From Macrostomum lignano (lineage: Eukaryota): a DNA stretch of 64,000 nucleotides. The stretch is taken from assembly GCA_002269645.1 (NCBI GenBank), contig NIVC01000016.1, positions 186,001 to 250,000 of the forward strand. The letters run 5' to 3'. The first letter of the stretch is position 1, and each line of letters opens with the position of its first letter. The position numbers and the translations under genes are program-made. Below the pieces are notes generated by a model. The model ran no database searches, was not told the origin of the DNA, and saw nothing but the letters and a program-made list of their open reading frames with translations. Below are positions 25,628-64,000 of the stretch, in pieces.

Positions 25628-28600
25628 TTAGCCGAACAATGCCACAGGAAATGGCTCGGTCTGAAGCAGGTCGGCCAGCTCGGCCGGATGTCGGGCCAGG
25701 AACTCGCGCACAGTGAGCAGCGCCGGATCGTCCGGCTGAAGCTCCCAGCGGTTTGTCCAGCGCAGGGCGGCGCGCGACCGCACGGCCGGGTCGAGCGAGT
25801 CGGGAGCGGACAGCAGGCACAGCAGGGCGGCCCGGCGCGCCTCGCTACAGCCGGCCTTCAATTCGTCTTCGGTGGCGTCGGCACCGACTGCCAGTTCGCT
25901 GAGCGTCGACACGATTCCGGCGACAGTCGAGCTATCCGAGCTTGAGCTGAGATGACCCTGCACTTCCGGCAGGAGGGCCAGCAGCTGCTCGGAGGCCAGG
26001 GGTCGAAGCGCCGCTAGGCGGCTCAGTTTTGCTTCTACTGTTGCTTCGGCTGGCTCCGCTTCAGGATTTAGTTCCGGCTCTGATTGACCAACTGTTTTTG
26101 GAATTGTTGTAACATCCGCATCAACATCCGGTCTAGTGTTCTCCGATTCCAAAGACTGTGCCAAAGCGATTGCTTCCTTTTCTGCTTTCTTGCGCGCAGT
26201 TGCTTCTGCTTTCGCTTTTCTGCGCTCATCTGCTTCCAATTTCTTGCGAGCGGCTGCCTCTGATTTTGCTTTTCTGCGCGCAACTGCTTCCTCTTTCTTA
26301 CTTTTGAGTGTCTTTGCTTTTTCTTGCTTTTGCGAAGCATCTGCTTCAACTTCGGCCTTCTTATCCTCTGATTCTCTCTGTGCATCTGCTTTTGCTTGCT
26401 TCTGTGCATCTGCTTCCGCTTTTGCTTTCTTGATAGAGTCTTCATCTGGAGCTTTTGTTTTCGCCTTCTTCAAAGCACCTGCTTCAACTTCGGCCTTCTT
26501 ATCCTCTGTTTCTCTCTGTGCATCTGCTTTTGCTTGCTTCTGTGCATCTGCTTCCGCTTTTGCTTTCTTGATAGAGTCTTCATCTGGAGCTTTTGTTTTC
26601 GCCTTCTTCAAAGCACCTGCTTCAACTTCGGCCTTCTTATCCTCTGTTTCTCTCTGTGCATCTGCTTTTGCTTGCTTCTGTGCATCTGCTTCCGCTTTTG
26701 CTTTCTTGATAGAGTCTTCATCTGGAGCTTTTGTTTTCGCCTTTTTCAAAGCACCTGCTTTCACTTTCTTTCGTGCGTCTGCTTCCATTTCCGCTTCCGC
26801 TTTCTTATGAATATCTGCCTCCGCCTCTGCTTCCGCTTTGTTTTGAGCATCTGCTTCCACCTCTGCTTCCGCTTTCTTCTGAGAATCTGCTTCCGCTTTC
26901 TTCTGAGCATCTGCTTCCGCCTCTGCTTCCACTTTCTTCTGAGCATCTGCTTCCGCTTTCTTCTGAGCATCTGCTTCCGCTTTCTTCTGAGCATCTGCTT
27001 CCGCCTCCGCTTCCACTTTCTTCTGAGCATCTGCTTCCGCCTCCGCCTCCGCTTCCACTTTCTTCTGAGCATCTGCTTCCGCCTCCGCCTCCGCTTCCGC
27101 TTTCTTCTGAGAATCTCCACCTGTTGCCGCTTCTGCATTATTCCCAGCATCTTTATCTGCTGCATCTGCTTCTGCTTGCTTGCGAACAGCATTGGTTTCT
27201 GCATCTAAATCAGTCAGGCGTGCCGCTTCAGTCTCGGCCTGCAGGCACAGATAATCGCCAGCATTATCGTCGATAGGCTCAAGAACTTCAGAAAGCCGGC
27301 CGCCGCATTGAAAGACGGCCCAAGCGGCCAGCGAGTCCGGCCGCCAGTCGGAGCCCAGCTTGGCCGACACGGCCTGATAGGCAGCTGAGCACTCCAGCCG
27401 GTGACGGCTCTCCAGTCTGGGCCGCTTCTCAACCGGCTGAGGCTCCTCATCGTCTCTATCTTTGTCCGTCTCGTTCAACTCGCGCATCAGCGACTGGGCC
27501 ATGGCCGGGATGTCAGCGAATAGCGACGATTCGGCGGCTAGAACGTCCGGGTCGAAGCCGAAATCCGATAAGGACTCCTGATCGGCTGAAGGAGGCGGCA
27601 GCGGCGGAGGCGGCAGCGGAGGCTTCGGCATCTCCCGAGTCGGAGAGGAAGAAGCCAGAGAAGGCCGCTTGGCGCTGTAGCTTCGAAGCGTTCGCCGCCG
27701 CATCGGCACATCGCAACTGGTGGCCTCTTTTCCCACTGTCTCTTCCTCTTTCGCGCTGTCATTTTCGGTGTCCCCGACGGTCTCGGGTGTCAGAGCCGCC
27801 GCTGCCGAGGCTCGTTTGCGCGTCTGCCGCGTCTGCCATTTCGGTTTTGGCGCAGGCGGTGGTGGAGGTGGTGGCGGCGGCTTCGGCGGCGGCGGTCGCT
27901 TAGCCGGCAGCGCAGTCACGGTCTCAAACTCACCATCGCTATCGTCTGAACTGGTCGACAATCGCGTCGAGGAGGACGACGAACTGGCCACCGCCGCGGA
28001 CGCTGCTGCCTTGGTTCGGCCGCGCCTCCGACTGCTGTCAGCCGAGACTGCCGCTGCCGGCTTCCACTGGAGCGTCTGGCTGCCAACACTACGAACCGCC
28101 GGCCGCTTCTCCAGCGCAAGGCGGAGGTCGCGGTTGGCCAGCCGCAGCTGCACCAGCTCGTTGTTTGCCGTTTGCAACTCCTGACGGAGCTGCCGGCGCT
28201 CGGCTTCCAATTGGGCTGAGGCCAGCGCCGCTGTTAAATGCTGCCGCGGCGGCGCCGTTGAATCCGCGCCGCTATCGGCGCTTTGCGGTTGGCGCCGAAG
28301 TCGAGCGACTTCCGTCTCCAGCTGGGCGACGCGCTCGCATTTCTCTCTGGCAAAAAGGACAGTTGAACAATTATTAATATATTCTCCCAGCATTTTAGTT
28401 GGTTGAAGTTAACCTCTTGCCCAGGTGACTATACATAATCTGGATCCCGAGTCTTCTCGAAACCCATAAGTACAGTTGTTATCGAAAACAAAGGATTCGG
28501 TTGCGATGGAAACATCTGTAAATAGTTGCTATGGAAACAGTTATTCTCGGTTGCTATGGAAACAATCATTCTCGGTTGCTATGGAAACAATCATTCTCGG

Positions 28601-47450: not shown

Positions 47451-47510
47451 CCGAGCTTAAAACTGCTCAAAAAGTTACCTTTTTTGTCACTATGGATTCC
47501 TGCGCTGCAA

Positions 47511-47840
47511 CTGAGGATCTGGGAGGCTGGCCCAGCAGCTGAGGGTCTGGGAGGCTGGCCCAGCAGCTGAGGGTCTGGGAGGCTGGCCCAGCAGCTGAGG
47601 GTCTGGGAGGCTGGCCCAGCAGCTGAGAATCTGAGAGGCTGGCCTAGCAGTTGAGGATCTGGGAGGCTGGCCCAGCAGAGCCTGAGAATCTGGGAGGCTA
47701 GCCTAGCAGCTGAAGATCTGGGAGGCTGGCCTAGCAGCTGGAGATCTGGGAGGCTAGCCTAGCAGCTGAGGATCTGGGAGGCTGGCCCAGCAGCTGAGGA
47801 TTTAGGAGGCTTGCCTAGCAACTAAGGATCTGGGAGGGTG
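47511..47840. repeat. 28-bp minisatellite x 12 (CTGAGGATCTGGGAGGCTGGCCCAGCAG) at the GC/AT boundary
   Basis: 12 copies parsed; distal copies carry C->T/G->A changes. Confidence 0.95.
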
Positions 47841-48404
47841 GTACTAAAATAAATGAGAATTTATTTAAAAACTATAAACTTAGTCAATTTTAGAAGTCAA
47901 TAATGTATATATTTTTAAGGAATATATATATAAAAAATAAATATCATAAAAACTATTAATTGTAATAATAAATGCTATAAAAATAAATTGAAAAGATAAC
48001 AATTAGTCTTACTTTACAATGAAAATATTTTTAGATGAATAAAAACCACATTTAAAAGCTTTAAACTAGTTTTTACATAGCCTATCATAAGCTGTAGAAT
48101 GCCATAAGATGAAAAAATAGTTACTTTTTAGCTCATAATTCTATGCTTTCTATGATTTTTCAAGTAAAATAAATAAAATGTAAAAAGTTTAATGGATAAT
48201 AATTTAAATAGAATTTCCTTAATTAAATGAGTTTAATTATCAGTTTTAGATAGGAAAGAATAACAACAAGACATTTATATTATTTTAAGCCAAAAAATGA
48301 TATTGTTTTGTTAGTTTGAAACCTTCTATAAAATAGGGTGTTATTATATTATATTTATACACTGTTTCCTATAAAATTGTATAGTTTAATAGTTTTACAT
48401 CTTA

Positions 48405-48530
48405 ATAGTTAGAGTCCAATACTTATAACCAAAAGATTTGGCTCTAGACCCACTATGAACAATGTCTTGAGCAAGACAATTAACTCTATATACCTTTTGT
48501 CTACCTAACTGTAAAATGGTAAAATGGTTA
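48405..48530 (+). mobile_element. Heavily eroded CORE-like SINE remnant
   Basis: ATAGTTAGAG...ATGTCTTGAGCAAGACAATTAACTCT...CTGTAAAATGG: same core as the 20140-20279 copy plus the MIR-like CTGTAAAATGG motif. Confidence 0.55.
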
Positions 48531-49950
48531 CTAGCATTAGCTAGGATAATTTAGACTATATGATAATATCCATCTTCTATACTCAGGAAAGTGCATATAG
48601 AAAATTCTAGTATACAAAAAGTATATGCAAAATGATGCAAACACTGCCTAGCATAAGCCCAATAGAAAGTTAAGCACATTGTGATATATAGCAAAAGTTG
48701 ATCAAAAAATCTTATAATAATATATCCAAAATATGTTATCTATGTATATAATATATGAAGTTGTCTTCTTTAGACATTATTCTAAAATAAGAATTAGTAT
48801 ATATATAATAAATATTAAAATTCAAAATTGCATTTATTAGAAAGTTTGAGCTGATACCAATTTGATGATTTTGAATATGATTTGAAATAAAATTTAAGTT
48901 TAAAATTATATATACCCAACTACATTGTCTAAAGCTTGTGACTTATTAGTGACAGATCTGAGGATAATTTTGTCATGGCTAGACTTGCATATAAGGTAGG
49001 AATATTATAATTTTAGGCCTATTTTGGGCCAACCAAAAAAGTTAAGCCAATTTGCTTACTACTTAAAATATCCTTTATCTACCACTGGGAAATATTTATA
49101 TATTAAGTAAAGTGGCTCACTTAGCAAGTAAAAAAAGAAAGCCAAAAATCAACATATTGATTGTTATGATACATTTTATATGTCAAGGTGCATTGTGTGT
49201 CAGGTATAGTCTGGAATAAGAGAAAGCAATAAATAAAGCAAACTTAATTATTTGTCAATGTAACTAATGTGACAAAATTTAAATAAAATAACATTTTAAC
49301 ATTTAAGCAAACTTCTGAAATTTTAGGCTTTATATCACTTAAGATTGGCAAGATAATTTTCTATTTGATACCACAATGGCTGGCACCAAAGGGTATTTTT
49401 CCTATTATCAAAACTACATTTGCTAGTTATCAAAACAATTAACATTGAAATGTCTCATTATTTAAATAATTATAATCTATGCACTTAGCATATAATTAGG
49501 CCCATATCAGATAGTGAGATCCTTATTGCATAATGTATTAATGAATTTATTAAAAAAATATTTTTTGTTTATCTTGTTTATAACCTAAATGTTAAATTTT
49601 GTAAATATTATATTTTATAGCTTTATGGGTTAGTATGGCATAGAAATAGTGCTAGAGCACATGAAGCATATAGCCACCATAGTCAGGAAGATGTCTTGTA
49701 TATCAGAATTTTCTGGTGTGCATTAGCACTTCATAGTTCATTGGCATGCATATTTGGCATGCTTGAATCTTAAAAAGTTATATTTTGCAAACAAAAAGTT
49801 ATATACAAAGCTATTTGAATATAGGTTCAAGTATCTTCTAGTTTCTAAAACAAAAGCTATCAAAAGGTAAAATATTTCGAAGAAAAAAGTAAGTGGTTAA
49901 AAAGTGATAGGTGCAGATATTAATTAAATGTGATGGCATTCCTTCAGTTT

Positions 49951-50835
49951 ATAAGTACATTATAAGAATGTATCATGTCTATTATTCCTTTATAACAACT
50001 TGTAATCACACAAAGTTTTAGTATCCAAATTCTATAAAATAGCAATTCTATATTGCAGAAAACCTTCTATTTTGCCAGTTTCAGTTTACAATCATCTTAT
50101 ATTTTGCTCATTGCAGTGCAAAAATGGTATGTTCAAAACTAAAAAACTAAAAATACACAAAATAGAAAGTGCAGTTTGTTGAATGATACTTATAAACTTA
50201 GGGTAAAAGTAATATTGCCAGCTTTGGTTTGCAATCATTTCAGTGGAATGCATGTGTAGAAATGATTGTAAACCAAAGGTGAGAAGGAGCAAAGGTGAGG
50301 GAGGATTTCAATGCCCTTGATCTGGAATGAATAGCAATTTTCTGCATGTGACTATTTATTATATTTGACATGCTTTCCTATAGCCAGCTTTGGTTTACAA
50401 TCATTTTAATGGGAAATATATGTTTGGGTGATCATAAACTGAATGTGATATATAAGCTACTAGTTCAAACTTGCTACTTAACACATGGGACTATTAGACA
50501 CCATTTTCTATAGCCAGCTTTGGTTCACGATTATTTTAACGGGAAATGTACATTTGGATGATTGTAAACTAAAGGTGATATATAAGCTAGAACAACTTTA
50601 CTATCCTTTGAAATTAACAGAGTTAGCTTGTCAACTTTTGATTTCTTTTCATTTGAAACCATTGTTGGCTTTTATGTCTATTTTAAGTGGGTGATCATCA
50701 CTGTTTGAGGTGATTGTAAACCAAAGGAATGCCAATGTGATAGTGCTATTTTATAGAATTTAGATACTAAAATTTTGTGTGATTGCAAGTTGTTATAAAG
50801 GAATAATAGACATAATAAATTTTTATAATGACTTA
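49951..50835. mobile_element. Foldback/MITE-like element with ~95-bp inverted arms and internal hairpin modules
   Basis: 49951-50044 is the approximate reverse complement of 50744-50835. Internal TTTGGTTTACAATCAT / ATGATTGTAAACCAAAG modules in both orientations. No TSD identified. Confidence 0.6.
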
Positions 50836-51053
50836 CAAATGTCAAATGTTATAATGAAAAAAAGTCCTTTATTGTTGTAACATAATTTATTTTATTGTTG
50901 TAGCAAAAGTAAGGTAAAAGTAAGGTCACAATTTTGAAGCTTTGATATACCAATTTTTTTGCATGCTTGGTATATACTTAACTAAAATTTTGCCCAAAAA
51001 CTGGCATACACTAGACTCTAGATACTTCCCTGACAATGGCATATATCATACAT

Positions 51054-51204
51054 GCGCAACTTTAGAAATCACCCGGCTGTTTCTATTGGCAACACACACA
51101 TATAAGTCGCTATTGGCTGATACCAGTCACGTGACTACTTTTCCATCCAATAGCGACTGTATGTGTTGCCAATAGAAATGGCCGAGTGAATCCCAAGGTT
51201 GCGC
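51054..51204. repeat. ~150-bp imperfect palindrome centred on AGTCACGTGACT
   Basis: Arms GCGCAAC / TTTCTATTGGCAACAC / AGTCGCTATTGG mirrored by CCAATAGCGACT / GTGTTGCCAATAGAAA / GTTGCGC. Confidence 0.85.
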
Positions 51205-52391
51205 CCAAGCATGGCATATATTATAAGTTAATATATAGAGATTATCTTCTATAGATATATTCTAGTACATGCTTTGTCACCTACCTACTACTATAATAAA
51301 TAACTGTGGTTTCCAATTCATTTGCCTACTAACAGTTTGTTTGTTAAATAGATGAAAAGCCTTTTTTTTACTTTTTGTCTACTAGAAAATAGGAATAAGG
51401 AGCCATTGTATCCTTGTTAGTATTATTAAAATACTATAGATTTAATCATTTTAACAAACTTATAATATTATAATATTATATATAAAACAGAAAGAAAAAT
51501 ACTAATAGACTTGACTAGCAATCTACACCCCCCTGTTGGGGAGCCAAAGAAATACAATACACATTTTTTTAATAAGCTACATGTAGCCTTGAAATCTTAA
51601 AAAATCTCCTATCAAACTTCTATTATAACCCTAACACTAACCCTAACCATAACCCAAAATTTAATATTTTGTCCATAAGTTTTTGCATGATGCTTCTATA
51701 GTTTTTTGCATGATGCTTCCATTATTTTTTGCATGACACTTCCATGATTTTTACATGATGCTTCCATTTTTTTGCATGACACTTCTATGATAAATATTGT
51801 TAATAAGCTACATGAGCTAAGTTATAAGCTACCCTAAACCAATGGAACCAAAACTTTTGAAAATTTTTAAAGATAAAAATATCAATAAATTGCTTTCTTA
51901 TTCAACAATTTATAGATGCAAGACATATAATTTCAAATCTAGAGTTATTGCAAACAATGTCTCCTTTCTCTAAAACCTTTTCAAATGCCAATAATAATAC
52001 TATGCATAAATGGCAAATATACATAAACTGCAAATAAAGTGTAAATCATCCTATTTAAAGAAATCAACCCTTGCAACATTTAAACAATATCAACAGATTG
52101 TTGGGCAGCTACCACCTTACCCTACATTTTTGGTATCTAGTCAATCCAGTGACAAGACAATCTAGCAATAGAACAATCCAGCAACAGACAATCTAGTAAC
52201 AGTCAAATGGCAATAGTCAATCCAGGAACAATTTGTAATAAAAAGCTATTAGAGCCTTTTCATATTACCAATTCCAGAACCAGAATTGGTTTGGAATTCC
52301 AAGAAAAACAGCAATATAACTATTAAACTCTGTTAATATTTGACTGCTTTAACAACTTAACTTAGCACAATTTTTCACTTTCTTCTTGGCG

Positions 52392-52853
52392 ATTGTCATT
52401 CAATAATAAAAACTTTATAGCACGTATCTCCCTCTAGTTATAGAGACAAAAAGTTATACTTCACAAATTGGTTCTGGTTCTGGAATCAGAGCAAGCAATA
52501 TGAAAAGGCCCTTATATGTAAACCAGCTATTATTACTTAAACAGATTAGAGAGAGCTTTGATTGTAATAATTATTATATTAATTGTTTATTGCCATTATT
52601 ACTATGTATTTTTTATTAGAATGTATGCAAAAAGTTCCAAGAATTAGAATTTAGCAGGTTCAAAATGTGCAGATTTCAATCAACTAGGTCTGGTCCATCA
52701 ATAGCTTATTTGCTTATAATGGGCCTATAATGCTTATAATGCTTATAATGCTTATAATGGGTTCAAACCAAAACCAATTTGTGAAGTATAACTTTTTGTC
52801 TCCATAACTAGAGGGAGATACGTGCTATAAAGTTTTTATTATTGAATGACAAT
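52392..52853. mobile_element. MITE-like element, ~460 bp, with ~85-bp near-perfect terminal inverted repeats
   Basis: 52392-~52478 (ATTGTCATTCAATAATAAAAACTTTATAGCACGTATCTCCCTCTAG...) is the reverse complement of ~52768-52853 with few mismatches. TSD not seen. Confidence 0.7.
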
Positions 52854-55800
52854 TGCTGTAAGCACTGGAATTGTGCTTACATCGAAGCAAAAAAACAACG
52901 GCCTCCTCTCGTCTCAACTGGTTCTATCCAGCCAGACCAGCTCTACACTAAAGGGCAGATAACAAAGCTGAGGTTGGAAGGCCAAGCCAGCAGCCTGCGA
53001 ACGCGTGACACAGTGGACTCGCAGCAATGCTTTGGGGGGGGGGGGTGATATGGTTGCCTAACAACGGGACAGAGAAAAATGCTCGAGCGATAACCCTGCC
53101 CCGCTCAAACTATGCATTGCTCTTCATTTGTCAACTAAACCAGTTTGCTTGCTTGACTATAAAATAAACTGTCTTGAATAATTTGTGGCACAGAGAGAGA
53201 TTCGGAAATGTGAGCCTCACACTCATAACAGGGCCATCAGAGGCCAGTGTGTTAGAAAGTCTTTCTGACTTGTGAGCAGAAGATAACAGGAATAAAAACT
53301 GTTATAATCGCCAAGAAGAGAGTGAAAAATTGTGCAAAGTAGGGCTGTTAAGGCAGTCAAACATTCAACAGAATTAAATAGATCTGGAAGATTTGAAGAT
53401 CTTGGAAGATTCTTTCTTGGAAGATTTGAACCAATTCTAATTCTGGAATTGGTAATATAAAAAGCCTCAATGATAATATATGTACATATATATATATTGA
53501 TTAAAAAATATGAAATCAAATTAAAATTATACATTCTTTATTTTCATTAAAGGCCACATGTGCACTAGTTTTTCATCTATAGATACATTATAATATTAAA
53601 AAATGCATTTGATGTGACAGCCTAAGGCTAAACTATGAAAAGTATGGACATAATGTATTAGTATCATTTTTATTAGAGAAGATACTGGTTGTCCTAAAGT
53701 TTATTATCTACATGTAAAATTAAAAAATAGAGTTCATATAAAGTTTTGCTTAGGGGCCTATATTTATCATGTGTAAAATCTACAATACAAAATATATTAC
53801 CATATTTTCTGTCACCAATTTGACTGTCGCTGAATCATCTTGTTACTAGTTGGTCTGGAAGCCACATTTTCACCCTTATTTCCTAGCAGATAAACAGTTT
53901 TAGAAAGAAAAAAATGGTTCATTTGCTCAGCACAGCATACACTATATACTATATCATACAAACTGTCAGTGGACAAAATGACTATCACTGGCACACATAT
54001 AATTGTTATCAATTGCTAATAAATTTGTCAATACCAACTAATTTTTATTTTTATTTTATTTACACTCATTTGAAAGTGTAAAAAGGTTATTCATTTTCTT
54101 AAGACAAAGCATTTTTGGGCATTTTGCTATTGATCAAACTGTATGAGTATGAGTTACCTAGTTTAGTTAGTTATTAGGCTATGGGGATATCATAGCTATG
54201 CCCATAGCCTAGTAACTAATTTTAATATAAAACCAAAACGAATAAATATAAAAGGTTATAATGTTATCGAAATTCTAAATATCAGTAATAGAAGTAACTT
54301 ATCAATAAATAAAAGAAAAAAATTATTATTTAAATTCTTATTTAAACTATTTAAAGAATTATTTAAACTATTTAAAGAATTGTCTAAATTCTTATTAAAA
54401 TTCTTAGATAAATAATATCAATAAAATAAAAACTAGGGCCCATTTTTATTGAATGAATGAAGGGGATTCATAAAACTAATGAAGAAAGATAATGTTTCGT
54501 GATAAACAGAGTTCTATATTCTAAGAAAGTCTTGCATTTGAAACAAGTGAAAATACGCTAGAATCAATAGTTGTGTTAATAAATGTAAAAAAGCATTGCA
54601 TATAACCATTTTCATGTTATAACTAATTTACTAAAATTTTTGTAAGATGTTAATAAAAATTTGGTTTAGTGGTTAAAAAATTCAAATCGGAGTTAATTAT
54701 TAAACCAGACGTACGCTGCTTTTTAAATTAAAGATTTCGTGGTTTTTAAGTTTTAATTATCAGTCAAATAATCAGGCAGCATATGTCATTTGTTAAGGCC
54801 CAATGAATGAAGTTTAAAAATTTTTTATTATATAATACTGCTAATGATAAATAAGAAAAAATAGCTCAAATCTTTAAGCATGGGTTTCGCGGCAGATAAA
54901 CAAGTCCTGCCCATTCAGTGATTCAGAATGATCGTTTGCGTATTGTATCCTTTATCAGTCGGGAAAACCACATATCAAACCTAGATCTATTCAAATGCAT
55001 GGAATTTATGCAACAGTCAATTGTGCTTAGTTATTGTTTTTCTCTTGCTGGTTTTAGTTGGTCAGACTGACAGACTCAAGTAATTTTTTATAAGTAAATA
55101 ACTTTGCATCTTGTCTTTGTCTATTGTATCTATGTTGTATTATATTATCTATACAATTTATAATTGTATTGTAATTGTAATCTTCTCTATAACTCTATAT
55201 ACATACCTACAAACTAGGCCTATAGTACATTAAAAGACCTAATCTTAATTCCCAAATCCCAATCAATAAGGCATTTTATTTCATATCTAGGCCCTAGTCT
55301 TGGCCTAATGCCAAACTGATTTGATTTTTTTCAAAGCATAGGTAATTGAATTTTTTAATAATTAGATAGGCCAAGTAATGTGTATTCATAAGATGGCTCG
55401 TTCCATCTAATTGTATATTTGTGTTAACAATCCATATCACCAAGTACCATTGATGGCCCCCACTTTAAAAGAGAAGCATGGCCCCCTCCTGCCCTCCTAT
55501 TCTAATGCCTATATTATAGGATATTTAATCATTACTCTTACTCAATACTAGGCCTAAATGGATTCTTATTTTTTAAATTCTTTTTTTTTGTATATTACAG
55601 GGAGATTTGTTTAATCATTTTTTAGGCTTATAATCAATTAATTAGGCCTACAAATCTACAATCAATTTTAGATCTTTCATTTGACCTAATCTATATAACT
55701 AAAATTTATTATGTCTATTTGTTTGTTTTTTTGTTTGTAAAGTTTTTTTTTTTAGAATGAACCACAAGACCAATCTTCACAGGACTTGCACTGTTAGCTT

Positions 55801-56629
55801 GCAAATTTTCTGGCGGTGATGTGGAAGATTTTGCTAAAATTTCTAATAATGCCAAGGATGTTTAATTAGCAAAAAACTACTTTTTGCCACGGAATTTCCG
55901 TGGTCAGTTGAAAAAAGGCTTCCTGACTGCTAATTTGGCTGACTTGATTGAGGTTGCATCAGCAATCTGGCCTATCTCTCGAGTGTATTTCATTTAGCTA
56001 GGCTGATTTGTGTGCAGAAAGGAATGGGGGTTCATTGGCTCACTTGGCAATGTGCAAAGGCATGTGTATCCCTGGCTGCAGGGCGGCGTCAAAATTTAGC
56101 TTCGGCAATGGTTGGGGAGAGAAATTCAATGACTTATTTGCAGGCCTTCAAGTGTAGCTGTGATTTTCATTTGTTGATTGTGCTTTGAGTTTTTTAGATT
56201 GAAGTGAGATTATTATATTGCCTGAAAGAGCTTGAAATGCTGAACATGGGGATATAATTTTATTGCTTAAATCTGAAAATCAGAAGCATAGCACTAAAAA
56301 GAAGATTGGCTTGAACAATGTACTGTGTATATTATTGGCTGGGGCCAATTGAAAATGGACAGCTGTGTACACTGTTGGGGCAGGGAGAGAGAGTTGAACT
56401 CAAATGCAATTTTCAATTGCAAGGCCTCTGGGTTTGGGGACTCAAATTTGTACACGCAAAATATTTCGTATATTTCTCTTAATAAAGTGGGAACTGGGTA
56501 TGGCAGGAGTTCTTGACCAATGATTTAATTTGGTCAAGGTGCCATGAATGATTATTCAATCAGAACTTTAACAAGCTGCTTTTCATCCGAACTACTATTT
56601 AGTTCATATGACTGTCTATGAAACTTATA

Positions 56630-56970
56630 AATTGTTCAAAGTTGGTTTTCACTATTGAAAATTGGTTTTCACAATTCAAAGTGCATTTTGGAGCATTCGA
56701 AGTTGGTTTTGACCATTCAAAGTTGGTTTTGATTATTCAAAGTTGGTTTTGACTATTTGAAGTTGGTTTTGACTATTCAAAGTTGGTTTTAACTATTTAA
56801 AGTTGGTTTTTGACTATTTGATGTTGGTTTTCACTATTTGAAGTGTGTTTCGGAGCATTAGAAGTTGGTTTTGACTATTCAAAGTTGGTTTTTGACTATT
56901 CGAAGTCAGTTTTGACTATTCAAAGTTGGTTTTAACTATTCAAAGTTCATTTTGGCCATTTGAAGTTCGC
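56630..56970. repeat. ~20-bp minisatellite (AAGTTGGTTTTGACTATTC[CG/CA/TG/TA variants])
   Basis: About 16 degenerate copies. Confidence 0.88.
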
Positions 56971-56999
56971 TTATCGGTGTTGTGTGCTGTTTCTCACTG

Positions 57000-57205
57000 C
57001 TTGATCTGTCTGTCTTCCAGCAGGTTGTCTCTGCTTGATCTGTCTACTTTATTGTGGGCTTTCTCTGCTTGATCTCTCTGCTTTTATTGCGGGCTTTCTC
57101 TGTCTGTCTGTCTTCTAGCGGGCAGTCTCTGTTTGATCTGTCTGTCTTCTAGCGGGCAGTCTCTGCTTGATCTGTCTGTCTTCTAGCAGGCAGTCTCTGC
57201 TTGAT
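57000..57205. repeat. ~33-bp degenerate minisatellite (CTGCTTGATCTGTCTGTCTTCTAGCGGGCAGT)
   Basis: About 6 copies. Confidence 0.8.
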
Positions 57206-58268
57206 TGATGATTGATACTGCAAGGTGTCTATGGGTGATGTTGCCAGGTTTGGTGCAGTTCGAGAACTGTCTGTGTCCCGCGAAGTGGGTCTTCCTGGTA
57301 GTCCAATCTATATTTTAATTTCATCTCATATCATAAGATATATAAAAGTAGAAAATACTTAGCACATATAAAGCCCTATCTATGGCATGGGCATTTAAAT
57401 TCAAAATTCAAATATAAAAAATATTAAAATAATTTTTTGAGTATTTTATCTATTTACAAACAATTTTTTTTCTTTTAAAATTTATATAGGCCTAAGCATA
57501 CTAAGCCCCCATGGTAGGTACCTAAGCAAAAAGTCAAATATAAAAAGCATTAAAAATATTGTTCTTCAACTATTTGACTTACTTTCAATTGGTATAAATT
57601 TTATATACCAATTAATTAGGCCCATTAACTATTGTCCCTATCTTTGCCAATCATTACTTACTATATATTAAAATGACACAAAAAAGTTAAAGCAGTTTAA
57701 AGGCTAGAGAAAATGGCTTGTTTCATTTGCTTATTGTATTTGAAACCAGCTTTATATTTATAAACCTCTCTTTTTCATTGACTGTCTTTTTATTATTAGT
57801 AAATATTAAAAATCAATAAACATAACAATTAAACTGGAGTTTTCAATTGGGATTGTGTAAAGGGTCTTAAAACTCTTTAGCTTTATTGTGAATATACACT
57901 CTACACTATACATTGGCCTAGAAGAGATGTAAATGGTTAAACTAAATAATTCAATTTAGTAATAGAGTGCCCATTGAAAGCATTAAAAATCAGTTTTTGA
58001 ATATTTGACCCATTTCCAATTAAAATTTTGCTATTGTATTTGTTTTGTCTACCTTTTTATTGATGTTTAAGATGCCAAATAGCACTTATAATTCTGCTAT
58101 ATAAAGTAGCATATGATGCTATCTGGAATCAATATAAAAGTTATTTTATTAAATTTTAATATTATTGAAAAAAAAATTTCTTACCTATTTAGTATATTTT
58201 TATATTTATAATTAATATTGCAAATCAAAAACAAATTTACAGGTTTAATAAACAATAACTACATTCCA

Positions 58269-61200
58269 ATGAGCTACTCATCATTGAGCAAGGCTCAGCT
58301 TAGCTTTGAGTATTTGCATACAAATTCGTAAGTTTTCTTTGTTTTACATTTCTATAAACAATTAAGGCTTTAAATGTAATTTAATTTAAGGCAGGTCTGT
58401 TTTAAACTGTTTATACAACTATTGAATTTTAGAACTACTCATGAGTTTCTTTTTGGTGCCATTGCTGAGCTAATTGACAATGCCAGGTGAGTGTATTGGC
58501 TTCTGCCTTATCTTCATTGAAGTTCCTATCTTGATAAATAATTTCAATGTATTGTTTAATCACATATTTCTTTTGTAGAGATGCTCATGCAACTGAGTTG
58601 GACATCTTTACAGGTTTGTGCCTTTCTGTTCAATACTTCTTTTTCTTACATCGCATCATTACTCCATATTAAGCAAGGAATTTTTAGGCCTTTTTGACAG
58701 CTTATGCTTATAGTTTCTTATGACATGAAAGCTGTATGCCCAACATTTATTATTGTCAATAGCTCTAGACATGCTGTCTATAGACACAGTATCTCTGGAC
58801 ACAGTAGCTCTTGATGCTACCAAGACTCAACATTTCTAGACTCAATCTCTAGACACAGTATCTCTAGACACAATATCTCTAGACACAACATCTCTAGACA
58901 CAATATCTCTAGACACAATATCTCTAGACACAATATCTTAGAATCAATATCTCGAGACACAACATCTCTAAGTCTAAACACAATATCTCTAGACACAATA
59001 TCTTAGAATCAATATCTCGAGACACAACATCTCTAAGTCTAAACACAATATCTCTAGACACAATATCTTAGAATCAATATCTCGAGACACAACATCTCTA
59101 AGTCTAAACACAATATCTCTAGACACAATATCTCTAGGCAAAATATCTTAAAATCAATATCTCGAGACACAACATCTCTAAGTCTAAACACAATGTCTCT
59201 AGACACAATACCTTAGAATCAATATCTCGAGACACAATATCTATAGACTCAAAGTCTCTAGCCTTAAAATCTCTGGGCCCAATATCTCTAGACACAGCGG
59301 CTTCAGATACAGCATTGACCTGTAAAAACAGTACAATAACAAAGGCCTAACTCCCTAAAATATCTGGCTCACTGCACAGCTCAAAATGCGGAACTACGCG
59401 GCGGCTACATGCTGTGCCTGCGCGACAACGGCTGCGGCATGGACCCCCAGGAGACCAAGGACATCATCACGTTTGGCCGGTCGGCTAAACGCTCGGACGA
59501 AAGCAGCGCCATCGGCATGTACGGCAACGGCCTGAAGTCCGGCTCGATGCGAATCGGCAACGACCTCATTCTGTTCACTAAGAAGGAGGACACAATGAGC
59601 GCCCTGTTCTTGTCGCGCACGTTTCACGAGGCCGAGAGTCTGGACGAGGTGATTGTGCCGCTGCCCTGCTTCCGGGCGGACACGCGCCAGCCGCTCTACG
59701 ACCTGGCCGAGGACCCCACGGCGGCCGAGCGGCACCAGACTGAGATGGCCGTCATCTATAAATACTCGCCATTCAAAACTGAGAAAGAATTCTTTGCCCA
59801 ATTTGACAAGCTCAACTCCGGCAGCAGCGGCACCCTGCTCATGATTTACAACCTCAAACTGTTGGACAATGGCCAGCCCGAGCTGGACGTCACCACGGAT
59901 CCCACGGACGTGCTGCTGGCCAGCCCGGACTTTGATGACGAAACCGATCTGGGGGTTTATTCCGATCACGAGTGAGGCTTGCCGCTTTTTGATGCGTGAC
60001 TTTGCAAACTGGACACCTTCACAAACTAGACGCTTTATAAAAAACTATAAATTTAATCCCGTTTATGGTTTCATGAAAAACTTTTAGTGATCAATCAGTA
60101 ATCAGACATAGCCCCGTTAGGTGTAATAGTAAGCATCAGCAATTTCAAAGATTAGAATTACTGTGATTAGTCTATTTGAAATTTAGATGTTTAAAAGTAG
60201 AAAGGTATTAATCCTGATCTTAGGCGTTCTAGCCTTGGATGTGAAAGCAACCCCCCCCCCCTAATCTTTGGCATCTCAGCAACTGCTGTCTGTGAGCCAT
60301 GGCATCTCAGCAACTGCCCCCTGTGAGCCATGGCATCTCAGCAACTGCTGTCTGTGAGCCTTGGCATCTCAGCAACTGCCCCCTGTGAGCCATGGCATCT
60401 CAGCAACTGCTGTCTGTGAGCCTTGGCATCTCAGCAACTGCCCCTGTGAGCCATGGCATCTCAGCAACTGCCCCCTGTGAGCCATGGCATCTCAGCAACT
60501 GCTGTCTGTGAGCCTTGGCATCTCAGCAACTGCCCCCTGTGAGCCATGGCATCTCAGCAACTGCTGTCTGTGAGCCATGGCATCTCAGCAACTGCCCCCT
60601 GTGAGCCATGGCATCTCAGCAACTGCTGTCTGTGAGCCTTGGCATCTCAGCAACTGCCCCCTGTGAGCCTTGGCATCTCAGCAACTGTCCCTGTGAGCCA
60701 TGGCATCTCAGCAACTGCCCCCTGTGAGCCATGGCATCTCAGCAACTGCCCCTGTGAGCCATGGCATCTCAGCAACTGCTGTCTGTGAGCCTTGGCATCT
60801 CAGCAACTGCTGTCTGTGAGCCTTGGCATCTCAGCAACTGCTGTCTGTGAGCCTTGGCATCTCAGCAACTGCTGTCTGTGAGCCTTGGCATCTCAGCAAC
60901 TGCTGTCTGTGAGCCTTGGCATCTCAGCAACTGCTGTCTGTGAGCCTTGGCATCTCAGCAACTGCTGTCTGTGAGCCATGGCATCTCAGCAACTGCCCCT
61001 GTGAGCCATGGCATCTCAGCAACTGCTGTCTGTGAGCCATGACATCTCAGCAACTGCTGTCTGTGAGCCTTGGCATCTCAGCAACTGCTGTCTGTGAGCC
61101 ATGGCATCTCAGCAACTGCCCCCTGTGAGCCATGGCATCTCAGCAACTGCTGTCTGTGAGCCTTGGCATCTCAGCAACTGCTGTCTGTGAGCCATGGCAT

Positions 61201-64000
61201 CTCAGCAACTGCCCCTGTGAGCCATGGCATCTCAGCAACTGCTGTCTGTGAGCCATGATATCTCAGCAACTGCTTTCTGTGAGCCTTGGCATCTCAGCAA
61301 CTGCTGTCTGTGAGCCTTGGCATCTCAGCAACTGCTGTATGTGAGCCATGGCATCTCAGCAACTGCTGTCTGTGAGCCTTGGCATCTCAGCAACTGCTGT
61401 CTGTGAGCCTTGGCATCTCAGCAACTGCTGTCTGTGAGCCTTGGCATCTCAGCAACTGCTGTCTGTGAGCCTTGGCATCTCAGCAACTGCTGTCTGTGAG
61501 CCATGGCATCTCAGCAACTGCCCCTGTGAGCCATGGCATCTCAGCAACTGCTGTCTGTGAGCCATGACATCTCAGCAACTGCTGTCTGTGAGCCTTGGCA
61601 TCTCAGCAACTGCTGTCTGTGAGCCTTGGCATCTCAGCAACTGCCCTATTATTTTACCTGTATTTCCTGCGACGACTCTGGGGCGACACAAGTGATTCTG
61701 GGACGCTTCTTGGTCTAGGCACCGTTTTCATCGTTTTCATTGGGATTGGAGTCTCATGATTCTTAATAGAGATCAAGTCGGAAGCATGAGTTCCTCACCC
61801 TATTTTGATAATGAAAACTCTTCTCTCGCTAATTCAAGCTCCTACAGGACTGGATTCACCCCCCCCCCTCTCACCACCGCAGTCAGCCGCCTGAGCGCAG
61901 ATCTCTACGCCACTACGTATCAATAATGTACATCGATCCGCGCATGAAGGTGTACATCCAGAACAAGAAGGTGCAGACCCGCATGCTGCTGTCCTGCCTG
62001 TACAAGCCGCTGCAATACAATTACGCCTCTCGCACATTCCGCAATCGGGCGGAAGCGGAAGCCAGCAGATCCAAAGAGGAAACTAAGCAGGCCGATATGC
62101 GAGTGCGCGAGTTCGAGTCCCGCCTGCGCGATCTGGAGCAGCGGCTGGGAGAAGCGCCAGTGGATACCGCCGATAGGATTGCGCTGCGCAAGGCGCGGGA
62201 CGCCCTGGCTTCTAGCAAGCGGGAGGCCCAGATGAAGAAGGTGATTTAGGGGGAGCGGATCTCTTAATTAGTCCTGTTTGGCAATTCGTTTTGTACATTT
62301 TTCAGTTGACAATCGCCCATCTATCTACTCGGAATTTTCCCCCGAGAATGGCCGTCGACCTCCCGAGAATGGCCATCAACCTCACCAAGAATATTGCCCT
62401 CAGTCCTTATTAAAAATCACCCGTAAACCTCCCTGAAGAATCACTCTTCAACCTCTCTAAGAATCGCCCTCAGCCACTCTAAGAATAACCATCAACCTCA
62501 CCAAGAATCGCCCCCAGCCCTCACCAAAAATTGCCTTCAACCTCACCAAGAATGGCCCTCAACCTTCCCAAAGAATAGCCGTCGACCTCCCGAGAGTGGC
62601 CATCGACCTCAACAAGAATCGCCCTCAACCTTCCCAAGAATCGCCCTTAACCTCACCAAGAATCGCCCTCAACCTCACCAAGAATCGCCCTCAACCTCAC
62701 CACGAATCGCCCTCAACCTCACCAAGAATCGCCATCAACCTTTCCAAGAATCGCCCTCAACCTCACCAAGAATCGCCCTCAACCTCACCAAGAATCGCCC
62801 TCAACCTCACCACGAATCGCCCTCAACCTCACCAAGAATCGCCCTCAACCTCACCACGAATCGCCCTCAACCTCACCAAGAATCGCCATCAACCTTTCCA
62901 AGAATCGCCCTCAACCTCACCAAGAATCGCCCTCAACCTCACCAAGAATCGCCCTCAACCTCACCAAGAATCGCCCTCAACCGCCTCACCGCAGGTGATG
63001 GCCCAGAAGAAGCAGAAAGCGCTGAAGGAGCCGAAGACGCTGACATTTTACTTCGGCGTGAACCTGGAGCAGCGCAACATGTACGGCATGTTCGTGTACA
63101 ACTGTTCCCGCCTCATCAAAATGTACGAACGCACCGGGCCCCAGCTGGACAGCGGCCAGACCTGCCGAGGCGTGGTCGGCATTGTGAACGTTCCCTACAT
63201 CCTGCTCATGCCGACCCACAGCAAGCAGGACTTTGCCGACGCCAAAGAGTACAGAGCCCTGCTCAGGGCCATGTCCGACCATCTCATGCAGTACTGGGAC
63301 GACATCGGGATTGAGAAGCGGCCGGGCGGTGTCGACGCTTTCTGGGCCGAGTTCGGCTACTTGAAAGCCAAGTGGAGCGAGCCGCCGTCGCAGGAGCCGA
63401 AGTACGCCAAGAAGCGGGCCATCAGCCTGCAGACTCACGTGCAGTGCAACCGCTGCTTGAAATGGCGAATACTGCCGTTCCAGTCTAATCAGGTGAATGA
63501 ATCAGCTGCCCTGATAGCCAGCTGGAATATCTACAACAATCGCCCTTATTTACCTATCCAACAATCGCCTTTATTTACTTATCCAACAATCGCCCTTATT
63601 TATAATCGCCGCTCTATAAAAATGTCTAAAAATCGCACTAATCTGCCACTTAAATCCCGGCCACAGGTGGGCAAGTCGGTGCCGGACAACTGGGAGTGCA
63701 AGGACAATCCGGACAATGCGCACAAGCGCTGCTCTGAACCGGAGCAGATCCTAGCCGTGCCAGTCCGGGTGCTGAAGCGCAAGATCAAAACCAAGGAGCA
63801 GCGGCAGCAGGAGCTGGAGGACATGATCAAGCGGCGCCAGGCCGAGCTCGAGAAGCTCACAGGCGGCCAGGCTGTCCGCGGCCGCCAGCCAGCCAAGCGC
63901 GACGAGGAAGACGATTCTGAGGAGGAGGAGGAAGAAGAGTCCGAGGAGGAAGAGGAGGAGGAGCCCCCGGCTAAGCGGAGAGCCTCGCAGCAGCAGCAAC
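58269..64000 (+). CDS. MORC2: MORC2-like GHKL ATPase with CC1 insertion, S5 fold and CW zinc finger (3'-partial)
   Basis: Exons 58269-58327, 58433-58486, 58579-58613, 59380-59971, 61883-62240, 62995-63492, 63667->64000; all GT-AG and phase-consistent. [40 protein letters not shown]; DNGCGMDP; [16 protein letters not shown]; PERRSLR..MYIDPRM; coiled-coil insertion; [24 protein letters not shown]; CW finger [22 protein letters not shown]. Closely follows human MORC2 as I recall it. Confidence 0.95.
58775..59300. repeat. 15-bp minisatellite (TATCTCTAGACACAA) with higher-order repeats, MORC intron 3
   Basis: Tandem copies; a ~60-bp higher-order block recurs. Confidence 0.9.
60268..61645. repeat. 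~31-bp minisatellite (TGTGAGCC[A/T]TGGCATCTCAGCAACTGCTGTC), MORC intron 4
   Basis: About 44 copies. Confidence 0.97.
62340..62985. repeat. 22-bp minisatellite (AAGAATCGCCCTCAACCTCACC), MORC intron 5
   Basis: Diverged copies 5', homogeneous copies 3', running into the acceptor at 62994. Confidence 0.95.

Follow-up and report, generated by a model that had tools for sequence, protein, structure and literature searches.

The gene for MORC2, a chromatin-silencing ATPase, begins in the free-living flatworm Macrostomum lignano within an AT-rich block of DNA that is strongly depleted of CpG dinucleotides. The stretch analysed, termed here the window, is 64,000 nucleotides in length (assembly GCA_002269645.1, contig NIVC01000016.1, positions 186,001 to 250,000 of the forward strand), and composition counts place the block at window positions 47842–59379, i.e. 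∼11.5 kb with a GC fraction of 0.30. The feature is real, statistically strong and reproducible across independent contigs. The block is probably old, unconstrained transposon-relic DNA that is near mutational equilibrium and has been depleted of CpG by germline 5-methylcytosine (5mC). The initial annotation of the window had proposed a process of broader sequence context that resembles repeat-induced point mutation (RIP) of fungi, and this interpretation is rejected.

CpG depletion, edges and elements of the block

With tandem arrays masked (47842–59350), the block has a GC fraction of 0.300 and 59 CpG per 10.3 kb, which is an observed/expected ratio (o/e) of 0.26; GpC has an o/e of 1.59. When two young insertions are left out along with the arrays, 40 CpG remain per 9.7 kb (o/e 0.20). 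The masked flanks have a GC fraction of 0.512 and a CpG o/e of 0.87 on the left, and 0.547 and 0.94 on the right. The region was originally described as having common GpC and CpG-rich flanks, and this description is accurate. The three CpGs first listed, at 49878, 50528 and 50540, are exactly the only ones in 47504–51054, and the other sub-intervals pointed out as depleted are nearly CpG-free, with none in 51203–52389 and one each in 53310–54238 and 57282–58651. In the CpG-free run at 47503–49878, 31 CpG are expected in the AT-rich part (P ∼4e-14). The remaining long CpG-free runs of the window are tandem arrays with a repeat unit that has no CpG.

Comparison with an AT-matched background, which had been suggested as a check, shows that the block is depleted beyond its base composition (Fisher p = 3e-13). 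The background was made up of 300-bp bins of unique, AT-rich sequence from the rest of the window (GC 0.377), and its CpG o/e is 0.72. Dinucleotide counts with arrays masked give a CpG deficit of ∼172 in the block and a TpG plus CpA excess of ∼194; the CA/TG o/e is 1.18 in the block and 1.06 in the flanks. The CpG content tracks sequence age, as parts of the block that are common to other copies of the locus have o/e values of 0–0.13, and parts with insertions specific to the window have values of 0.3–0.5.

The GC content falls at 47842, where a 28-mer minisatellite ends, and rises at 59380, where MORC2 exon 4 starts, within one intact gene. The domain had been called sharply bounded. The step is indeed abrupt at both ends, but it mostly reflects the make-up of the flanks, i.e. 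GC-rich minisatellites and exons. Tandem arrays make up about half of the flanks, and most of them are GC-rich. They are 80–99% identical internally and therefore probably young. Much of the unmasked flank appears exonic, with a GC fraction at third codon positions (GC3) of 55–86%, and a CpG-rich stretch is present at 45–47.5 kb. Unique non-coding DNA of the flanks is likewise AT-rich (GC 0.30–0.42), including the first 300 bp of intron 4; the start of this intron (60001–60200) has a GC fraction of ∼0.30 and intron 6 one of 0.41. Thus the GC step was not left by hypermutation that halts at a line. It is largely a switch in the kind of sequence, between old unique DNA and young arrays plus exons. 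The block-specific feature is the depth of CpG loss, with an o/e of 0.2–0.26 vs ∼0.7 in other AT-rich unique sequence and ∼1 in exons.

The bulk of the block is unique sequence rather than repeats, and four AT-rich tandem arrays are found in it. The elements within the block, together with the minisatellite at its left edge, are as follows.

47507–47841: 28-mer minisatellite at the left edge, ∼12 units, GC-rich and CpG-free; its variants are 11 transitions and 1 transversion
49948–50839: foldback or MITE-like (miniature inverted-repeat transposable element) element with ∼97-nt terminal inverted repeats that are 89–92% complementary
51051–51210: young palindromic insertion of ∼150 bp (51054–51204) with the direct repeat ATGGCATATAT on both sides
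52252–53468: nested inverted-repeat element; the inner arms, 52389–52479 and 52766–52856, are 97% complementary
56635–56954: 20-mer tandem array in which TTCGAAG is mostly decayed to TTCAAAG, TTTGAAG or TTTAAAG
56997–57205: 34-mer tandem array; CpG is kept in 3 of 6 units and is TpG or CpA in the others
58759–59296: AT-rich 15/65-mer minisatellite in MORC2 intron 3, with a length that varies between copies of the locus

Internal direct repeats of 130–166 bp in the foldback or MITE-like element differ from each other by CpG to TpG/CpA changes. The palindrome at 51051–51210 is near-perfect; it contains four CCAAT/ATTGG motifs and a central GTCACGTGAC E-box, and forms an isolated islet of seven CpGs (o/e 0.81). 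Its empty site is kept in another contig that carries the locus (L004, see below). Also missing from L004 is a 449-bp segment of the nested inverted-repeat element (52857–53305, 12 CpG). Together, these two window-specific insertions hold 19 of the CpGs of the block. By its look the palindromic insertion might pass for a promoter, yet it is missing from another copy of the locus.

No open reading frame (ORF) longer than 104 aa is present in the block upstream of the MORC2 ATG, and a Pfam scan of six-frame open stretches of at least 44 aa in this part gave no families and no transposase remnants. Repeats common to block and flanks are limited to TGTC-type low-complexity matches.

CTA and TAG were initially said to be abundant, which is more than the counts support: the o/e is 1.22 for CTA and 0.96 for TAG, with 1.76 for CTAG. 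The CTAG excess probably comes from the intron-3 minisatellite, as its unit contains CTAG. Base composition predicts 5.6 GGCC in 47842–58758; 31 are present, often in the form TAGGCCTA. With a second-order model, however, the expectation is 21, and the enrichment of GGCC and TAGGCCTA was dropped as a separate signal as it is not significant alone; it mostly reflects the excess of GpC and of CC/GG. A short degenerate telomere-like tract (AACCCTAACACTAACCCTAACCATAACCC) is located at 51625–51655.

The mutational process

Two further contigs carry the locus. NIVC01003611.1 (L004) is collinear with window positions 48712–59380 and has GC fractions of 0.25–0.37 and CpG o/e values of 0.06–0.56. NIVC01000317.1 (L002) is homologous from window position 55423 on; farther upstream it has different and less depleted sequence. 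The copy in the window is L003 (window position = L003 position + 48244).

A comparison of the window with L004 over 7.8 kb of the block shows 4.2% of sites to differ, at a transition/transversion ratio of 1.6. Positions that are CpG in either copy differ in 27 of 43 cases, 21 of them being CpG↔TpG/CpA, whereas other G/C sites differ in 10%. The fraction of C↔T differences is 0.40 in the CpG context, 0.074 in CpA, 0.081 in CpT and 0.040 in CpC. The CpG value is about five-fold that of CpA or of CpT, and it differs from the two taken together (Fisher p = 4e-10). The high C↔T fraction at CpG and the TpG/CpA excess, which is close to the CpG deficit, bear out a localized CpG loss of the 5mC-deamination type, as had been suggested. 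As a separate observation, CpC cytosines show half the C↔T rate of those in CpA/CpT (0.040 vs ∼0.078).

A loss of CpG without methylation can be envisaged, by context-dependent mutation bias or by selection against CpG in DNA that is AT-rich and simply old. This would be in keeping with the report of 5mC in M. lignano at low levels only (PMC11292947). It appears improbable, however, as the ∼five-fold CpG-specific C↔T excess, which is chiefly CpG↔TpG/CpA, is the classic signature of 5mC. In addition, other AT-rich unique DNA of the window keeps a CpG o/e of ∼0.7–1.1, and M. lignano retains the methyltransferases DNMT1 and DNMT3 (PMC11292947, PMC9246332).

Changes in the block have a direction. 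In a three-way comparison of the copies at 55.4–58.8 kb, single-copy changes are GC-to-AT in 68 cases vs AT-to-GC in 37 (p = 0.003). The equilibrium GC that these changes imply is 0.21–0.25, an approximate value since rooting is uncertain where the topology shifts between sub-blocks. Tandem arrays were used as a second measure across the whole window, with unique variants scored against the majority consensus of each array. Equilibrium GC values obtained in this way are 0.35 for flank arrays, 0.31 for block arrays and 0.30 for the edge array, and transition/transversion ratios are alike inside and outside the block (0.85 and 0.88). Transitions at CpG sites exceed those at other G/C sites by ratios of 5.0 and 4.8 in block arrays (∼5 in the array at 56635–56954) and of 4.0, 14, 5.2 and 1.4 in the informative flank arrays; several further flank arrays have zero CpG transitions. 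The flank arrays decay likewise, and therefore the AT bias is not block-specific. Neither AT-biased mutation nor CpG hypermutability is limited to the block, which differs in the extent of its decay.

A RIP-like process, or another deamination of cytosine outside CpG (CpA to TpA, or one similar to that of an editing enzyme) aimed at repeats of the block, is highly improbable. The idea came from the view that repeats show one-directional transitions in CpG and also in CpA/TpG. Transitions do dominate among block repeat copies (49 vs 13 transversions), and nearly all variants of the edge minisatellite are G↔A or C↔T. The extension to CpA/TpG as a property of the block does not stand, as CpA is no hotter than CpT and the bias of the arrays is the same inside and outside the block. 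RIP results in a (CpA+TpG)/(ApC+GpT) index below ∼1.03 and a TpA/ApT index above ∼0.89. The first of these is ∼1.4 in the block (1.21–1.58 per kb), with CA/TG raised and not depleted. TpA/ApT is ∼0.95, mostly 0.84–1.05 per kb with one bin at 0.63, as RIP would have it, but this index is uninformative in AT-rich DNA, and the TA o/e is 0.92. Furthermore, the copies have a transition/transversion ratio of only 1.6, changes go in both directions, and most of the block is not repeat sequence. With an excess that is CpG-specific and absent at CpA, both the RIP-like reading and that of a broader context are removed. The alternative that accompanied it in the initial annotation, CpG methylation together with the loss of a GC-raising force, fits the evidence better.

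The AT-rich blocks produced by RIP in the fungus Leptosphaeria maculans are nevertheless similar in appearance. They are sharp-edged, filled with transposon relics and surrounded by GC-richer, gene-rich DNA, and they have a high TpA/ApT. The M. lignano block differs in that it lacks the CpA-to-TpA signature, has CpA/TpG in excess and shows a mutational excess only at CpG. It also belongs to an animal and has the intact start of a conserved gene inside it. The RIP machinery is known only from fungi.

MORC2 and the copies of the locus

An ORF at 59409–59975 encodes a GHKL ATPase (Pfam HATPase_c_3) with MORC2 proteins as relatives. The exon model below was built with relatives as guides; all exons are on the plus strand.

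58269–58327, plus strand: MORC2 coding exon 1, with the ATG at 58269
58433–58486, plus strand: exon 2, AT-rich, no CpG
58579–58613, plus strand: exon 3, inside the block
59380–59954, plus strand: exon 4, the first GC-rich exon, at the right edge of the block; GC 0.60, GC3 0.82, 54 CpG (o/e 1.06)
61887–62240, plus strand: exon 5, GC3 0.75, CpG o/e 1.07
62995–63492, plus strand: exon 6, GC3 0.86, CpG o/e 0.94
63667–64000, plus strand: exon 7, zf-CW region, GC3 0.83; it continues past the end of the window

All introns are GT-AG and the spliced reading frame is open throughout. The spliced protein is 99% identical to the annotated protein of 964 aa, and its best named relatives are flatworm MORC2 proteins (57–60% identity). 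The 5′ region of MORC2 is in the block, as first stated, with coding exons 1–3 inside it and exons 4–7 outside. A connection that had been drawn with the role of MORC proteins in silencing is unsupported and probably coincidental.

Base composition changes with the exons. Exons 1–3 lack internal CpG, and their GC3 is 19/49 (39%). Exons 4–7 have GC3 values of 75–86% (82% overall) and CpG o/e values of 0.78–1.07. The GC3 contrast is significant (Fisher p = 3e-10), and exons 1–3 deviate with z = −7.1 given the amino acids they encode and the codon usage of exons 4–7.

The annotated transcript start, 58245, is 24 nt before the ATG and three bases past an acceptor-like site, ‘tttacag’. This context would fit spliced-leader (SL) trans-splicing; the true promoter might then be anywhere upstream in the block.

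It should be asked whether the block is an artefact or foreign DNA, i.e. whether it stems from a chimeric join, from inserted mitochondrial DNA or from an element acquired recently. The abruptness of the compositional step at both ends might suggest this, and an odd extra copy of exons 1–3 in L004 shows that local assembly errors exist. Such an origin is nonetheless extremely improbable. The spliced MORC2 frame crosses the right edge with GT-AG introns. In addition, the three contigs are 4–5% divergent in the block and have the same exon 3–exon 4 junction and the same compositional step, which rules out a chimeric join. A misassembly had been named as something to be checked, and the finding of the block in two other contigs, one collinear and one partial, answers this. 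The block also gives no matches to mitochondrial genes and no Pfam families in the six-frame scan described above. A nuclear insertion of mitochondrial DNA was considered and rejected, as tblastn with the invertebrate mitochondrial code (code 5) gave no match for fragments of COX1 or COB. ARAGORN in mitochondrial mode made only three weak mitochondrial-type tRNA calls in the 11.5 kb.

The extra copy in L004 is a 463-bp segment of MORC2 exons 1–3 at L004 positions 4895–5357, ∼4.7 kb upstream of L004's own exons. It is 100% identical to window 58268–58730 and ∼95% identical to L004's own version, and a direct repeat of at least 55 bp brackets it. It is either an assembly artefact or the product of ectopic duplication or conversion.

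Identity between the copies is mosaic. Window positions 59297–64000 were compared with L002 positions 10855–15272. The two sequences are 4–5% different in the block, but past 61645 they agree at all 1703 unique sites, of which 517 are intronic. The divergence switches in or beyond the 31-mer minisatellite of intron 4 (60269–61644) and not at the compositional edge. Inside the block, the tree topology of the three copies shifts between adjacent sub-blocks. As judged from these alignments, the mosaic indicates that gene conversion or recombination has recently exchanged sequence among the copies. A slower mutation rate outside the block was also considered as a cause of the drop in divergence; the complete identity over 1703 sites led to its rejection in favour of recent exchange.

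Exon 4 differs from L002 and L004 at 1 of 575 sites, and no difference is synonymous, whereas the adjoining intron is 2–5% different. This suggests either strong constraint at synonymous sites or local conversion, and is relevant to the question of how M. lignano exons hold a GC3 near 80%. A comparison of CpG mutability in exon 4 (0/54) with that in the block (27/43) was not used: exon 4 is ∼25 times less diverged overall, and the comparison has no power.

Other features are found in the flanks. Minisatellite density is extreme in 1–47500 and 60269–62982 (periods 12–138), and there are also (GACA)n arrays of 350–900 bp. These tandem arrays are mostly intronic and give rise to numerous long ORFs that are spurious (SVCL..., DRQT... 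and the like). On the minus strand at 21239–23835, a RING (zf-C3HC4) ORF and a downstream ORF that is beta-propeller-like are split by a (GACA)n array; together they possibly represent a TRIM-NHL-type gene. A 921-aa low-complexity ORF at 25628–28393 has no Pfam match. Searches of the whole window with Rfam (gathering thresholds) and ARAGORN gave no non-coding RNA or tRNA matches.

Probable germline methylation and the decay of old DNA

How might the block have come about by methylation? It would consist of DNA upstream of MORC2, either intergenic or outron, of relics of foldback/MITE non-autonomous transposons, and of the short introns around exons 1–3. General AT-biased mutation pressure would have brought this DNA near equilibrium, at a GC fraction of ∼0.2–0.3, and germline CpG methylation with subsequent 5mC deamination would have removed nearly all CpGs. 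New CpGs would return only by way of recent transposon insertions. The edges would be sharp since the neighbouring sequences differ in kind, namely recently amplified GC-rich minisatellites, high-GC3 exons and the CpG-rich region on the left. The exons (CpG o/e ∼1) and the left CpG-rich region would be unmethylated in the germline. In this view 5mC would be the cause of the CpG loss, methylation would be limited to blocks of this type and would not extend to gene bodies, and the block would be older than its flanks.

Some points weigh against this explanation. The putative 5mC is read from mutational footprints, and the matched background totals only ∼2.4 kb within the window. The AT-rich unique bins of this background have a CpG o/e of 0.72, and therefore age alone cannot explain the depletion; the block would also have to differ in methylation state. 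The GC3 of exons 1–3 is a further difficulty. Synonymous CpG decay alone would bring GC3 only to ∼0.63, and the addition of a stronger local AT bias gives a rough expectation of ∼0.55–0.6. The value found, 0.39 (95% interval ∼0.25–0.54), is lower, and thus more than CpG loss acts, or fails to act, in these exons. CpG loss and AT bias together explain the low GC3 only partly. The gap could be due to the absence of a GC-raising force such as GC-biased gene conversion (gBGC), to weaker codon selection in tiny 5′ exons that are set between introns of 92–105 bp, or to chance, with only 49 codons involved.

Absence of gBGC has also to be considered for the block as a whole. The flanks and exons 4–7 might be kept rich in GC and CpG by gBGC at recombination-active, unmethylated DNA, whereas a recombination-cold block would receive no gBGC and would decay to AT; CpG methylation would then be a secondary contributor or a correlate. 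Exons 1–3 do follow the block in their GC3, at 39% vs 82% in exons 4–7 and below the CpG-decay prediction, and changes in the block are biased from GC to AT (68 to 37). The copies are also mosaic in their ancestry: the window equals L002 over 1.7 kb of unique sequence past 61645, which means that exchange between copies occurs in the gene body, and the two are 4–5% apart in the block. This scheme is rather unlikely, however. Unique intron DNA beside the GC3-rich exons is AT-rich (0.30–0.41), so that GC enrichment appears to be exon-specific and not regional. The shifts in topology among sub-blocks mean that exchange takes place inside the block as well, and the point at which divergent sequence gives way to identical sequence is in the intron-4 minisatellite or past it, away from the compositional edge. 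The tandem arrays of the flanks, moreover, have the same AT-ward bias. The situation resembles that of gBGC isochores in mammals and birds, or of the CpG-rich hotspots of the dog, in the GC3 contrast within one locus, the GC-richness of putatively unmethylated CpG-rich parts and the exchange between copies. It differs in that the scale is far smaller here, with a step inside one intron, and the enrichment looks specific to exons and repeats.

Germline methylation of old DNA would have a parallel among invertebrates. The mosaic germline CpG methylation of Ciona and many other invertebrates results in a bimodal CpG o/e and in methylated and unmethylated domains with sharp boundaries. Among the flatworms studied, M. 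lignano is unusual in having retained both DNMT1 and DNMT3, and its block shares with the mosaic type the strong local CpG depletion, the matching TpG/CpA excess, the CpG-specific hypermutability and neighbouring DNA with a CpG o/e of ∼1. There are differences, however. The canonical target of mosaic methylation is the transcribed gene body, and this pattern is not seen here: exons 4–7 and the other exons of the window have CpG o/e values near 1, and exons 1–3 alone are CpG-free. The depletion is instead on intergenic, transposon-relic DNA and the first three small exons.

The cause is most likely ordinary, i.e. decay of methylated CpG together with AT-biased mutation in old transposon-relic DNA. 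A more far-reaching proposal, offered tentatively and somewhat doubtful at present, is that M. lignano has an atypical invertebrate methylome: germline 5mC would mark only AT-rich blocks of transposon relics with sharp limits and would leave gene bodies unmethylated, and one of these limits would fall inside MORC2. If this is true, the promoter region and exons 1–3 of a chromatin-silencing ATPase would be in DNA of the silenced type, and this in all three copies of the locus.

The finding is of moderate value, and its value lies in two things. The first is a specific and testable prediction for the methylome of this flatworm, which is as yet undescribed: AT-rich relic blocks with sharp edges should be methylated and gene bodies spared. 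If the block should prove unmethylated, its CpG-specific hypermutability would need a new explanation. The second is the GC3 switch within a single gene, which provides a clean case for asking what keeps the exons of M. lignano GC-rich. In addition, the three diverged copies of the locus represent a ready system in which context-specific mutation rates can be measured.

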